64,000 nt of DNA from Podarcis muralis (GCF_964188315.1 NC_135662.1:61256001-61320000), one strand, 5' to 3'. Shown: positions 14,561 through 26,035, counted from the stretch's first letter. Numbers and translations: made by a program. Notes: generated from the letters alone by a model not told the origin.

Positions 14561-14697
14561 TTAGAAAGCAGTAGGGATCTCAGAGGTGACTGTATCCAGA
14601 GGTTGCCAATGACAGCTCATAAGTGTGTCAAAGAGTTCTTCACTTCTCACCATAAATTCTCTGTTCATTCTGTGAACGTCTATGTTGAGCTGTGGAT
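14561..14697 (-). CDS. C6orf52: TRNAU1AP-like protein (C6orf52 locus), last exon
   Basis: [45 protein letters not shown]; the [15 protein letters not shown] motif is shared by TRNAU1AP and C6orf52; 137 nt; AATAAA on minus strand at 14330-14335. Symbol assigned from the head-to-head position with PAK1IP1. Confidence 0.9.
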
Positions 14698-15351
14698 CTG
14701 TTTAAGCAAACAAAACATCAGTGAGCAAGGAATCAAGTAAAACAACTACCATATTGGGGGGGGGGGGACTTTGGAAAACAGTGTTACATAGCAGTGGGCT
14801 TCCACATGTACACCAGAATACTTTTTAACGAAGTTATATAAAGAATGCAACATTTGCATATTATGTTGTATCCTGCAGTAGCTACATTGCTGGAGAAAGA
14901 TTCTACACTGCATGAAATCTTATTTTTATGATGCTCATATTCAGTAAATTTCCTACAAAGCTTGGCTGCAGTGCTATACAAACTTACCTGGAGCAAGCTC
15001 TGTTAAACTTATTTCAAAGGATGAATGCAAAGGATTGTGTTTATCATGCTGGAGTGGGGAATCTGTTTCCATCTGAGGGCTGAATTCCCTCAAGAATAAC
15101 CTCCCTGGGACTAAATAGTGCTAGCATGGCAAAAGGCAAACAATGGCAATGGAGCAACAAATATGACACTACAGTACACTACTTTCCAGCTATGCAAAAG
15201 GCAGCTGTTCCCATGCCCACCACACATCTTTCCATCCTATGTCCAGATAAGCAAGAGACATCATCACAGTTCAAGGACACATTGCAACCAGACAAAAAAC
15301 ACTCAAGGACAGTACACAGCCTCGGAAATTTCCAAGGCCAAGGGCCTAAAG

Positions 15352-16080
15352 TAGGGGTCAGCAAACTTTTTCATCAGGGGGCCGGTCCACTGCCCCTCGG
15401 ACTTTGTGGGGGGCCGGACTGTATTTTGAAAAATATAAATACCCTGCAAGCCGGTCCCGCAGCTGCCTCCAGACCTAGAGGAGGAACATACTCTGCACGC
15501 GCTCAGGAGCGCGTCTCGGCAATGGCCGCTCACCGGCGTTGTTGACGAGCAGCAGCCGCTCCATCGGCCTGTCCCTGTGGAGTTCCTAGGCGGTGTGACC
15601 ACGCGTTGTGGCCCGTCGTCCGAGGCCAGGTCGGTGGGCAGGCCACGCAGCCCTCCAGCTGCTCCAGCGCGGCTGCCAAGTGCCCCACCAACAGCAGCGC
15701 CAAGCGGGCACCAGGTGCAGGGCTAGCAGGCGCGCCAAGCTCCAGCTGAAGCCCCATGACGCGCCCGTCACGATGCCCATGGCGCAGCCCAGACCTGCCG
15801 CCCGCTGGCCTCTCTGTCTATGACCACGCCGGGTTTACCTCAGTGCGCAGGCGGCAAGGCTTCGGATTGGCTGCAGGAACTTCCTGCAGCCAATCTGAAG
15901 ATGCGTCCGTGTCGCCGCCCGCCCAGAAGCCATGCCAGCGTTGCTGAAGTCAGTCCCCGCACGGCAAGACGTCTGCAGTGCGTGAGGACTGACCGGGTGG
16001 GCAGCAGGGTCCGTGGGCTGGATTTACGAGCCGGGGGGGGCGCCACATCTGGCCCCTGAACCGTAGTTTGCCAACCCCTG
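15352..16080. mobile_element. Non-autonomous hAT element carrying a captured gene fragment
   Basis: TIR taggggtcagcaaact...agtttgccaacccctg; perfect 8-bp TSD gcctaaag (15344-15351, 16081-16088); termini match the reverse complement of 1476-1784. Confidence 0.9.
15520..15825 (-). pseudogene. SPR: Captured, frameshifted fragment of sepiapterin reductase exon 1
   Basis: Three frameshifted blocks GLGCAMGIVTGASWGFSWSLARLLA, LPTDLASDDGPQRVV and MERLLLVNNAG followed by GTGAGC, versus human SPR [40 protein letters not shown] and LQRLLLINNAG. Confidence 0.85.
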
Positions 16081-16431
16081 GCCTAAAGGACCACTTTGAT
16101 TCACAGGAGTTTCCCACCCCTGCTGAAAACAACATTTCAGATATTTTCTTTGGAGAGCAGTACATTTTGCAGAATGGAAAAAAAAGGGGGGGACAACACC
16201 CAATTGTTATTTCCACTTACAGTGAGACTTACCCTTCCTCCACACACCCCTGCATACCCCTGAAATCTGCTTGAGGGTTGAGGGACCCTTTGGAGCAGAC
16301 TTGGGGTACAGGGGCTGCAGAGGGAGATAAGGAAGAAGAATTCCACTGCAACTGCTGACACAATGTTGGATCTCGCCTAACTAAGATGAGCATCAAAGTC
16401 CACTTGCTTGTACTAACAATATCAAAATTAC

Positions 16432-16474
16432 CTTCTGTTATTAGATCGTCATTCATAACCATAGCAGAGGTCTC
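16432..16474 (-). CDS. C6orf52: TRNAU1AP-like protein, penultimate exon
   Basis: CAG acceptor, ETSAMVMNDDLITE, donor GTAATT; 43 nt, phase 0 to 1, fits both neighbours. Confidence 0.8.
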
Positions 16475-16956
16475 CTGGGGGAGGAAAAACATGAATCATT
16501 TCTCTAAAGAAAAAACATCTATCTGCTATTTTTGAAAAAGGAAGCGTTAAAGCACAATTGCTATAAACATTGTAACCTGATCCTCAGCTTCTTCCTCCAC
16601 CCCCCTTTTTACCTTAAACTCACATAAAGTTAGTAATTTAATGCAACTGAGCTGAGCTATATTTTGAGTTTATTGCATTTCAGTATAATGGTGGACAAAC
16701 TCCAAGGGTTTGTCTCGTCTGAATATTACTCATGTTAAATAAGGACAATCAGTTAAAGAAAAGAATCAAGCAGAAACATGATCCATGAATACAGTATAGC
16801 TATAATCCTATATGGCTTGGGACCAAGTCTCACTGAACTGGACAGTACTTCACAGTAAACCTCTATACAATTGGTTACAAAAGTTCTTAAAGCCTAGACC
16901 TAGTTCAGCCAGCCCTCTCACTGTGTGTGTTTTAAAACAACACAAGTTTACAATTA

Positions 16957-17202
16957 CAATCATATCTCGGATTAAATATGCTTCAGGTTGAGTGTTTTCA
17001 GGTTGCGTTCCGTGGCGATCCGGAAGTAACGGAATGGGTTACTTCTGGGTTTCACCACTTGCGCATGCACAGAAGCTCAAAATGACGTCACGTGCAGAAG
17101 CGGCGAACTGCGACCCACGCACGCGCAGACATGGGTTGCGTTCTGCTCAGGATGCGAACGGGGCTCCGGAACGGATCCCGTTTGCATCCAGAGGTACCAC
17201 TG
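16957..17202. mobile_element. Tc1/mariner-type MITE
   Basis: Right TIR gaggtaccactg plus TA; left TIR degenerate (caatcatatctcgg). Confidence 0.65.
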
Positions 17203-17308
17203 TATTGACAGATGTTAAAAAGCACCCAACAGCCATATTTAAGGTATATAGCCATTATTTCTACCAATGACCTTGTAAAAAAGCATGTAAGTATGCTCAA
17301 GTGGATAC

Positions 17309-23852: not shown

Positions 23853-23952
23853 GAGTGTCTATCAGAAGTACCAGATTAAGAAGCATCCCTAAGATGCAAA
23901 CTTGTTGCTTCAAGATAAATACAACTCTACATGGGTATAGTCTCCTCCCAAC
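23853..23952 (-). pseudogene. Vestige of ancestral TRNAU1AP exon 3 (RRM1)
   Basis: Strong acceptor ttttcag, exactly 100 nt, donor GTGGGT; ancestral frame LGGDYTHVEL versus IPAGYCFVEF, then stop codons. Confidence 0.5.
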
Positions 23953-24504
23953 CTGAAAATTAAAGAAAAACACATTCCCCCTTTTTTTAGGGTATGCTGT
24001 GCCCTTTATTTTTTTTTAAATTCTGTGTTTGCCAAATTAACCAAAGCAATATAGTTATAAATTATACCTTTATGTGCAGTGTCTACATTAGGACAAAATT
24101 AGTTTGGAAGTACTACATTCTATGTCAAACTATAATGGTACCTTTGTTCCCAAGGTACAAGAGCAAATCAAATCTGTAGATCAGCAATGCAAAATGTAAA
24201 ATATGCAATCAGGAAGCTAATATATTGCTCTACTTACAAGATTGCTGACAGACATAGCATCTTTCAAGACATGCAAATAACATGTTCTACAACTAGTTCT
24301 TCGAGCGGAATAATTTCAACTTACCAGTCAGTGTCTTCTACACAAACTGCCAAATAAAAATAACTCTGGATGCAGAAGATGGAGAGTACCAAAGTAAGGT
24401 GTCATCCAAAGTATTTCGAATTCCAAGTATCTTATGAATTCACAACTATTTTTGGTACTTTCTTCCTCCACGATTGCTAAACAACCTATGTTTTCACTAC
24501 AATA

Positions 24505-24550
24505 GAAAGAAAGAAAGAAAGAAAGAAAGAAAGAAAGAAAGAAAGAAAGA
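24505..24550 (+). repeat. (AAAG)n microsatellite
   Basis: About 11 tandem units. Confidence 0.95.
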
Positions 24551-24864
24551 ATTAGAGACACATAACAGTTTCATAGCAATAGGACTTATTTTGACTGAAG
24601 CAAGAACTGGGAGCCTTTTTGCTGTTTTGTACTGGTATTACAAATCTTTGGTGAGAGTATACTAAATTGGGTAAGTCTCAATGAAATCATCAAAACTTGT
24701 TTCCGTGATACTTTTCCAAACACAAAGCACACCACATAATTCTTAGAATAATTTTAGAAGAATACATTCCATAGGTAAGTGAGAAACCCAAAGTGTTGCA
24801 TCCCATTATATCTGCACATGATTGAGATGAATTTATGTTAATGCAACAGAACTTCACTTTCCTC

Positions 24865-25115
24865 TCATAAGAAAATAAAAGCCCTGTTGGATCAGGCCAA
24901 ATGATCACTTAGTTCAGCATTCTGTCCTTACATAGAACAGCCAGGTGTTCATGGGAAACCTGAAAGCAGGACCTGAGCACAATTCGCAGAACTGCCACTG
25001 ACAGTAGAAAAAGAACAAAGCTAATTTGGTTCGTTGCTATTGATAGCCTTATCCCTCCATGAATTGTCTAATCCTCTTTTAAAGGCATCCAGGTTGGTGG
25101 CCATCACAATAGGCT
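24865..25115 (-). mobile_element. CR1-type LINE 3' end
   Basis: Minus-strand ORF tail MATNLDAFKRGLD..DKAIN, typical of CR1 RT C-termini, followed by 3' UTR-like sequence. Confidence 0.7.
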
Positions 25116-26008
25116 GCAGGAACATAATTCCAGGGTTTAATTTCAAAGCAAGATTGGGGGGGCACATGGAGGAAGGTGAAAAACTCATAAAGAGTTTAAC
25201 AGATTTTGATTGCACCCTAGTAGTTTGGGCAAAATATAAAACAGAAAATAAATTTCTGAAAAAGACGCTTTCAAATCTGAAAAATCCAAAATTAAGTAGT
25301 TCCCGCATTTTCTGTAACAGATGTTCAAGAAGGGGGGGCGGCGGCAAAAAGTTGTGTTTCCCAATAGAAATATGCCCGTGTAATACAGTACTGTGATTTT
25401 TAAAAAAATCAAAAAACCACCTTACCAGGTCCTTCGTTTTTCAACTGAAAATTAGATTTCGCCTAGAACTGTATGTTTAGCAAAATATATCTGAGTATCT
25501 AGAAGGCGTCTCTGTCTCCCTTGAGTTTTAAGAGTTTAAAACGGGGGGGGGGGTGCTTTACATTTCAATTCTAGACCCGCCTGTTGGGGTTTTTTTAAGT
25601 CCCATTAGTCCAACGCGGCTCAATTTCCCCTAGCGACGCTTAACGGTGCAACCGGGCTACGTCTAAAACGAAAGCCCTGGGCTGAGCCTTTGCAGAAAGC
25701 CCGATCCAACGGTCCCCCAAGGTACAGGTGTCAGCCTTAAGCGGCACAGCCTGAACTAAGCGCGCCCAGGAGGATTGCGCAGCCTTGCGCGGGGCCAACC
25801 CGACAGCGAGCGGGCGGGAGAAGCGAGTCTCCCGCACGCGCCGAGGCCTCCCTCACAGGGGCGGGGCTGGAGAAAACTCCACGAGAAGAGCCGGGGGAGC
25901 CTGAAAACCACCCCCAGAAGCGCCGGAGGGAGGCCGTTAAGGAATGAGAAGCGCCTGTTCGCCACCCGCCAGCGCCACCCGCGCTCCCTCAGCCCCTCCG
26001 ATACTAAC

Positions 26009-26035
26009 GTCTCCGGCCTTCCTGAGAGCCGCCAT
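26009..26035 (-). other. C6orf52: Exon-1-like segment MAALRKAGD of the TRNAU1AP paralog
   Basis: 27 coding nt then donor GTTAGT, same size and phase as TRNAU1AP exon 1 (MAASLWMGD); not demonstrably in frame with the RRM2 exons. Confidence 0.5.

Follow-up and report, generated by a model that had tools for sequence, protein, structure and literature searches.

In mammals, TRNAU1AP (also called SECp43), a protein associated with selenocysteine tRNA, has 287 amino acids with two RRM domains, a Tyr-rich region and a C-terminal tail. The mouse gene consists of nine exons, and RRM1 is encoded by exons 2-4 (PMC4456167). Two-RRM relatives are found in sturgeon, gar, bowfin and sharks under the name 'tRNA selenocysteine 1-associated protein 1-like' (TSP1L), and members without any RRM are named 'C6orf52 homolog' in marsupials, eutherians and two caecilians, and 'TSP1L' in the coelacanth. 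Human C6orf52 has been reported as an oocyte-enriched 'missing protein' (PMC10775140). The link between C6orf52 and the Trnau1ap domain is already in the databases; on the history of this gene no paper was found among the CC-licensed PMC and the bioRxiv full texts (C6orf52, TRNAU1AP-like).

The gene described here lies on the minus strand at positions 14561-26065 of a 64,000 nucleotide stretch of the Podarcis muralis genome (GCF_964188315.1 NC_135662.1:61256001-61320000; referred to as the window, and all positions are counted from its first letter). We are confident that it is a TRNAU1AP-like (TSP1L)/C6orf52-homolog gene, the expressed and intact sauropsid ortholog of C6orf52. For the sauropsid ortholog both names, TSP1L and 'C6orf52 homolog', are in use in RefSeq. 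The lizard gene is a relative of SECp43 from which RRM1 is gone and in which RRM2 is retained, and it is already annotated across reptiles and birds.

Gene model and transcript evidence

The minus-strand frames of positions 14400-26400 were translated in all three phases, and exon limits were set by inspection of the splice sites. From 5' to 3' the exon chain is E1-U1-U2-(A)-B-C-D-E-F-G, in which A is a cassette exon. Every splice site conforms to GT-AG, and joining of the exons in a local script yielded a continuous open reading frame (ORF) of 342 codons' worth of protein; the predicted product has 336 or 342 amino acids, depending on whether translation starts at MASQ or at MGPQASVKGK. The spliced model was used only for checks of frame, identity and tree position, and the database searches were made with single exons. 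The 342 amino acid model is 97.7% identical to the RefSeq protein of Lacerta agilis (P0093) and 87-91% identical to those of Sceloporus, Anolis, Thamnophis and Eublepharis. It is composed, in this order, of a basic N-terminus, one RRM of the RRM2 type, a Tyr-rich low-complexity region and the Trnau1ap tail.

A preliminary description of the locus, made from the sequence, had recognized the five 3' exons (C to G), which correspond to exons 5-9 of TRNAU1AP. These exons were found to be open and in one phase as described, with GT-AG borders, and they encode the two RRM2 halves, the Tyr-rich exon, a 43-nt exon and the tail; the exon sizes of 120 and 137 nt given there for TRNAU1AP were also right (exons D and G). 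The gene model consisting of these five exons and an exon-1-like piece had to be extended, however, by four transcribed exons (U1, U2, A and B, between 21966 and 24496) that had been missed. Since two or three of these exons carry coding sequence for an N-terminal extension, the protein is not simply truncated.

The upstream exons were located with RNA reads from four runs of this species, three of bulk RNA-seq and one single-cell, over positions 20150-26149. In all four runs the gene region was transcribed from the minus strand. The non-coding first exon, E1 (26009..26065), lies in a CpG-rich divergent promoter and has RNA ends at both borders: template-switch-oligo sequence beyond 26065 in five reads of run X24 places the cap site at about 26062-26065, and seven X24 reads end at the donor 26009, their 14 loose letters being unique in the window at 24483-24496, the start of U1. 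Exon U1 (24325..24496, 172 nt) belongs to the 5' untranslated region; its acceptor sits behind a (CTTT)n tract that was masked in read mapping. The U1-U2 junction (24325|23270) was crossed by 96 reads from the four runs. Exon U2 (23205..23270, 66 nt) ends in ATGGCTAGCCAG and contains the MASQ start. From U2, 52 reads lead directly to exon B, skipping A, and 19 lead into A, seven of them at 22259 and 12 at an alternative acceptor at 22375, so exon A occurs as 22183..22259 (77 nt) or 22183..22375 (193 nt). Junctions from A (22259-22183) to B were found in 35 reads. At 21965, the end of exon B (21966..22090, 125 nt), 53 reads had loose ends running into the start of exon C (RPEFPRQEF). Minus-strand depth was 4-11 in the bin 25950-26149 and 17-35 in the bin 24350-24549; the depth of exon B (36-53) was the highest within the stretch covered by reads.

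RRM2 retained, RRM1 absent

The RRM is encoded by two exons. Exon C (19664..19840, 177 nt) starts with a linker that contains (RPEFx)4 and continues with the N-terminal half of RRM2 including RNP2 (IFVGEL); exon D (18299..18418, 120 nt) encodes the C-terminal half with RNP1 (RGYGFVRF). The halves match positions 1-33 and 36-69 of the Pfam RRM_1 profile, and an RRM2 hidden Markov model (HMM) scored 52.6 bits on exon C and 47.1 bits on exon D. Exon C was also matched (E 1.6e-9) by the solved structure of human SECp43 RRM2 (PDB 2dhg). The Tyr-rich region YNDYYQDYQNYY opens exon E (17309..17705, 397 nt), whose start aligns with the Tyr-rich YQQYQNYYSQW region of the fish and shark proteins (E 2e-6 to 3e-6; 3e-6 with sturgeon TSP1L), and is followed by a lepidosaur (D/E)R(F/Y) repeat expansion. 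Exon F (16432..16474) is a 43-nt micro-exon encoding ETSAMVMNDDLITE. Exon G (14561..14697, 137 nt including the stop codon) is the coding part of the last exon and matches the Trnau1ap C-terminal domain (Pfam PF17654) at E 4.7e-23 and 82.6 bits, the cutoff being 27. In tblastn comparisons with Lacerta P0093, exon D was 100% identical, exon E 94.7% and exon F 93% (E 0.002), and exon B was 100% identical to residues 11-52.

Between the lizard and turtle, crocodile or bird, 67-68 of the 81 residues of RRM2 are identical (83-84%), and between crocodile and bird 80 of 81; both RNP motifs are intact in the lizard. In the AlphaFold model of P0093, the nearly identical ortholog from Lacerta, residues 70-146 form a beta-alpha-beta-beta-alpha-beta RRM with a predicted local distance difference test score of 82-88, preceded by a disordered N-terminus and followed by a helical tail. 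Because of the sauropsid identity, the intact RNP motifs and the canonical RRM fold modelled for the Lacerta protein, RRM2 of the sauropsids is, as judged from sequence comparison, a constrained domain and not a decaying one. The same observations bear on the suspicion that the gene is a transcribed pseudogene or a non-functional remnant. Such a suspicion could be raised by the upstream ORFs (uORFs) of the leader, by a frame-shifting cassette present in about 40% of junction reads, and by repeat expansions in the Tyr-rich region (see below). It is opposed by the intact 342 amino acid ORF with its canonical splice sites, by the conservation of RRM2 and its motifs across sauropsids, and by the strength of the tail match; moreover, the repeat expansions are in frame and common to squamates. 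We regard a pseudogene as highly improbable.

RRM1 was searched for in three ways. With three two-RRM TSP1L proteins of sturgeon and shark as tblastn queries, the RRM1 parts gave only noise (E 20 or worse). For an RRM1 HMM based on seven proteins of fish and sharks, the best score in the minus frames of 19841-26300 was 1.4 bits, compared with a median best score of 3.2 in the Markov-shuffle null. In the transcribed exons U1, U2, A and B no likeness to RRM1 was detected (hhalign probability 0.1%). RRM1 is thus absent from both transcript and DNA, without a detectable relic. The preliminary description had correctly noted that there was no intact RRM1 exon upstream, but its picture of a decayed RRM1 does not fit, as nothing is seen to be decaying. 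The stop-riddled segment that it had likened to exon 3 is at chance level: the best candidate for such a relic, GYCLCYLVD at 22773-22811, reached only the above 1.4 bits. The idea that the sauropsid N-terminus is a degraded second half of RRM1 (ECL...PDYS spacing) was also rejected, the hhalign probability against RRM1 plus linker being 0.1%.

It might still be argued that RRM1 exons are present but were overlooked, or that the gene is canonical TRNAU1AP, the outcomes that the preliminary description had named as contradicting it. The only ground for considering this is that RRM exons are short and divergent; there was no supporting find. Junction reads follow the transcript from its cap near 26065 over E1, U1, U2, (A) and B into C, and no RRM is encoded upstream of C; the RRM1 HMM was without signal on either strand, and the trees place the gene in the TSP1L/C6orf52 group and separate it from TRNAU1AP (see below). 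The probability that we assign to this explanation is negligible.

A word search with exon E returned crocodile and bird relatives; orthologs from squamates, tuatara, turtles, alligator and further birds came from a second search, together with the two-RRM TSP1L proteins of sturgeon, gar, bowfin and sharks. In a tree of 294 columns the window protein stood beside Lacerta within a sauropsid clade (100/100), and this clade, on a long stem branch (0.68), grouped with the TSP1L proteins of fish and sharks (90/94); amniote TRNAU1AP formed a clade of its own (98/96). In a tree of 125 columns, made of the region after RRM2, the sauropsid proteins grouped with caecilian, marsupial and eutherian C6orf52 as their closest relatives (89/96) and TRNAU1AP was set apart (100/100); the placement of the coelacanth protein was without resolution. 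A tree of RRM2 alone, which bears on re-acquisition of RRM2 from TRNAU1AP, also gave no resolution. Taken together with the domain matches, these trees bear out the earlier proposal of a TRNAU1AP paralog with RRM2 as its single RRM, and the lizard gene is the RRM2-bearing ortholog of C6orf52, distinct from canonical TRNAU1AP.

The combination of N-terminus, RRM2 and tail is annotated in Lacerta, Sceloporus, Anolis, Thamnophis, Eublepharis, tuatara, turtles, crocodilians and birds. The RefSeq proteins of Lacerta agilis (P0093), Sceloporus undulatus (P0087), Crocodylus porosus (P0007) and Catharus ustulatus (P0069) consist of the same exon-encoded segments in the same domain order, and there is no difference in kind between the Podarcis gene and the sauropsid RefSeq models: in Podarcis the MASQ and MGPQAS starts and the NAGNAG acceptor of exon B (see below) are seen together, whereas in RefSeq they are separate isoforms of different species. 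Since the architecture occurs in all sauropsid groups sampled, it must be older than 250 million years and stable. These results speak against a lizard-specific intermediate, in which RRM1 is visibly decaying into relics of exons 1 and 3 and the protein starts at or near RRM2. It is true that RRM1 is absent, and that the nine-codon ATG...GD unit of E1 with its GT donor resembles the MA(S/T)LWMGD unit of fish and shark TSP1L; the sequences of two shark isoforms, P0124 and P0126, part immediately after this unit, as expected if there is an intron. By its position E1 may well derive from the ancestral exon 1, nine residues being too short for statistics. However, the exon-3-like signal was not above chance, the coding N-terminus upstream of RRM2 is conserved, RRM2 itself is strongly conserved, and the architecture is shared by all the sampled sauropsid groups, so that the claim of a single-RRM protein particular to this lizard must be given up. 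A lizard-specific intermediate is, in our estimate, very unlikely.

What remains of that description is the pattern of RRM1 lost and RRM2 kept, which is right at the level of the family, where it is old, sauropsid-wide and under constraint. In common with TRNAU1AP/SECp43 and with two-RRM TSP1L (P0118, P0126), the sauropsid protein has RRM2, the YQ.YQNYY core of the Tyr-rich region and the CHWQPLD tail. Unlike in TRNAU1AP, the counterparts of exons 2-4 (RRM1) are absent, and their place is taken by two non-coding exons, the cassette and the exon of the basic region. With the RRM-less C6orf52 types of mammals, caecilians and coelacanth (P0133, P0135, P0147, P0168, P0183, P0127) it shares the R.K.EF/Tyr-rich start and the tail; these types differ in having no RRM and an N-terminal module of their own of 23 amino acids (M..S..GF..QQ..YY..WQ). 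Homology of the sauropsid N-terminus to this module was rejected (pairwise shuffles p 0.004-0.5, mostly above 0.1; at most 4.4 bits on the N-module HMM), as was a hidden N-module exon in the lizard, for which the best candidate (20382-20402) scored 11.2 bits over seven residues against a null maximum of 13.9.

With the tail exon as query, 97 proteins of the family were recovered from 1.84 billion representatives. RRM1 is missing from every sarcopterygian member seen, and among these RRM2 is found only in sauropsids. As caecilians branch outside the amniotes, RRM2 appears to have been lost at least twice (in caecilians and in mammals); a third loss would perhaps have to be added if the coelacanth protein is orthologous. 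Exons C and D together comprise 297 nt and their joint skipping stays in frame, one way in which RRM-less products could readily arise; an annotated bird isoform (P0008) is without exon D alone. As to the stepwise domain loss proposed earlier, the form does lie between fish TSP1L with its two RRMs and mammalian C6orf52 with none, but the order of the steps is complicated by the RRM-less caecilians and coelacanth. It is fair to call the sauropsid protein intermediate in form; it is neither transitional nor specific to lizards.

N-terminus, leader and cassette exon A

The conserved basic N-terminus is formed by exon B together with U2 or A and reads MGPQASVKGK or MASQ, followed by ...WWRSPHKKRKKK...; exon B, supported by reads and by homology, contributes QDTVGKAKKESLPLWWRSPHKKRKKKSKARAGRPDFTSIPS, a basic region resembling a nuclear localisation signal (NLS). 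The MASQ start in U2 has A at -3 and G at +4 and serves the isoform in which A is skipped; the N-terminus predicted for the U2-B junction, MASQ|QDTVGK..., is that of isoform X3 of Eublepharis (P0100). The alternative start, ATG 22212 in exon A (MGPQASVKGK), is kept as MGPQAS[V/F]KGK in sauropsid models, and the TSP1L proteins of crocodile and bird, found by the word search with exon E, begin MGPQASFKGK...WWRGPQKKRKKK and continue directly into RRM2. At exon B there is a NAGNAG tandem acceptor (22087-22090, tag|CAG|GAT), both forms of which, differing by one Gln, were present in all four runs; RefSeq isoforms without this Gln exist in Anolis and Pelodiscus.

Tandem repeats, detected with Tandem Repeats Finder, are found in two of the coding exons. 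In exon C an in-frame 15-nt repeat of about four copies (19782-19842, minus strand) corresponds to (RPEFx)4 just N-terminal of RRM2; it is common to squamate orthologs and absent in turtles, crocodile and birds. In exon E, in-frame repeats of 21 and 36 nt (17399-17557, minus strand) account for the enlargement of the Tyr-rich region with (D/E)R(F/Y) units. Other squamates and tuatara have a comparable expansion, and the turtle Pelusios (P0072) has a separate DRGYDRAY expansion.

The leader contains two uORFs, both upstream of either main start. The first runs from ATG 26035 in E1 to the donor GT at 26008, encodes MAALRKAGD (nine codons) and is stopped by the TGA that opens U1; the second, of 25 codons, is in U1. 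The 27-nt exon-1-like segment encoding MAALRKAGD, noted earlier, is therefore part of a true first exon whose donor at 26009 is used, but it is non-coding, as it runs into TGA after splicing. Intronic depth was steady at 3-16 downstream of U2 (20150-23349) and zero in the U1-U2 intron (23350-24324); either splicing of the U1-U2 intron is much more rapid, or part of the transcripts begin near U2. In run X23 only, 12-16 reads had long loose ends flanking 40 nt of the E1-U1 intron (25068-25107), a pattern that resembles a repeat or a transcript originating at another place.

Exon A was included in about 40% of the junction reads into exon B. Neither of its lengths is a multiple of three, and when it is included, the frame opened by MASQ is shifted and meets a stop in exon B or C. 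The longest ORF then begins at MGPQAS, with out-of-frame AUGs upstream of this start. The stretch 22301-22183, consisting of exon A and about 40 nt upstream, matched an alligator protein model (P0070) at 36 of 40 amino acids in one frame and a Rhea model (P0067) at 25 of 27 amino acids in another. As models in two different frames both match, the nucleotide identity of exon A between lizard and archosaurs is probably about 90-95%, to be compared with 45-60% amino acid identity of the coding exon B across sauropsids. With its alternative use, its frame-shifting length and the premature stop in the MASQ frame, exon A has features of a poison exon; it also carries an in-frame ATG of its own (MGPQAS), and inclusion is not necessarily unproductive. 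The presumed conservation, the length and the level of inclusion suggest a regulatory cassette. Tentatively, and with less than even confidence, we consider that exon A may be an ultraconserved regulatory exon and not merely an alternative first coding exon, one that could act as a dosage switch through unproductive splicing or translation, like the poison exons of RNA-binding proteins. A search for an RNA element in exon A gave no Rfam match, and the fold z-score (-1.6) was not significant.

Beyond the shared GC-rich region, the divergent neighbour on the plus strand is a WD40-repeat gene (PDB WD40 matches, 28096-28275). The GC-rich region between the two genes contains a weak tRNA-like match (26754-26811, minus strand) that scored 23.3 bits with the Rfam tRNA model, short of its gathering score of 29, and may be a tRNA-derived repeat. 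A hairpin at 18599-18676 (minus strand) gave sub-threshold matches to microRNA families (mir-BART9, 28.9 bits versus a cutoff of 50) that are most likely due to chance. The D-E intron harbours an (AAG)n microsatellite of about 26 copies (18056-18134), and in the last intron (F-G) the stretch 15300-16100 is GC-rich and has long ORFs in both orientations.

Possible function and meaning for the family

For this locus the exon chain, expression, domain content, orthology and conservation are demonstrated, and it can be regarded as settled as a normal, expressed ortholog of an annotated gene, with a corrected gene model. Several points have to be weighed against this interpretation. The reads end at 20150, therefore exons C to G rest on homology to RefSeq models and on the loose ends leading from B to C. 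The messenger carries the two leader uORFs and, when exon A is included, out-of-frame ATGs. The matches of the neighbour are generic to WD40 repeats, a second exon of it had no PDB match, and PAK1IP1 is a candidate for its identity. Finally, nuclear localisation, RNA target and partners of the protein are all things that we infer.

The protein is probably a nuclear RNA-binding adaptor similar to SECp43. The single RRM would bind RNA, and the module made of the Tyr-rich region and the tail would bind partner proteins; the KKRKKK run in the disordered basic N-terminus could serve as an NLS of the classical type. By analogy with mouse SECp43, the Tyr-rich and tail module may provide the essential protein-interaction function of the family. 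In the mouse, an in-frame deletion within the Tyr-rich domain (exons 7 and 8) was embryonic lethal, and deletion of part of RRM1 (exons 3 and 4) had no phenotype (PMC4456167). In view of this, loss of RRM1 from the paralog would be tolerable, and the loss in this lineage parallels the dispensability of part of RRM1 and the essential nature of the Tyr-rich region in mouse SECp43. The uncharacterised human C6orf52 stands at the RRM-less end of this lineage of SECp43 paralogs, the sauropsid members of which keep an RRM that is conserved. It is thus in birds and reptiles that one can find out which RNA was bound in this lineage.

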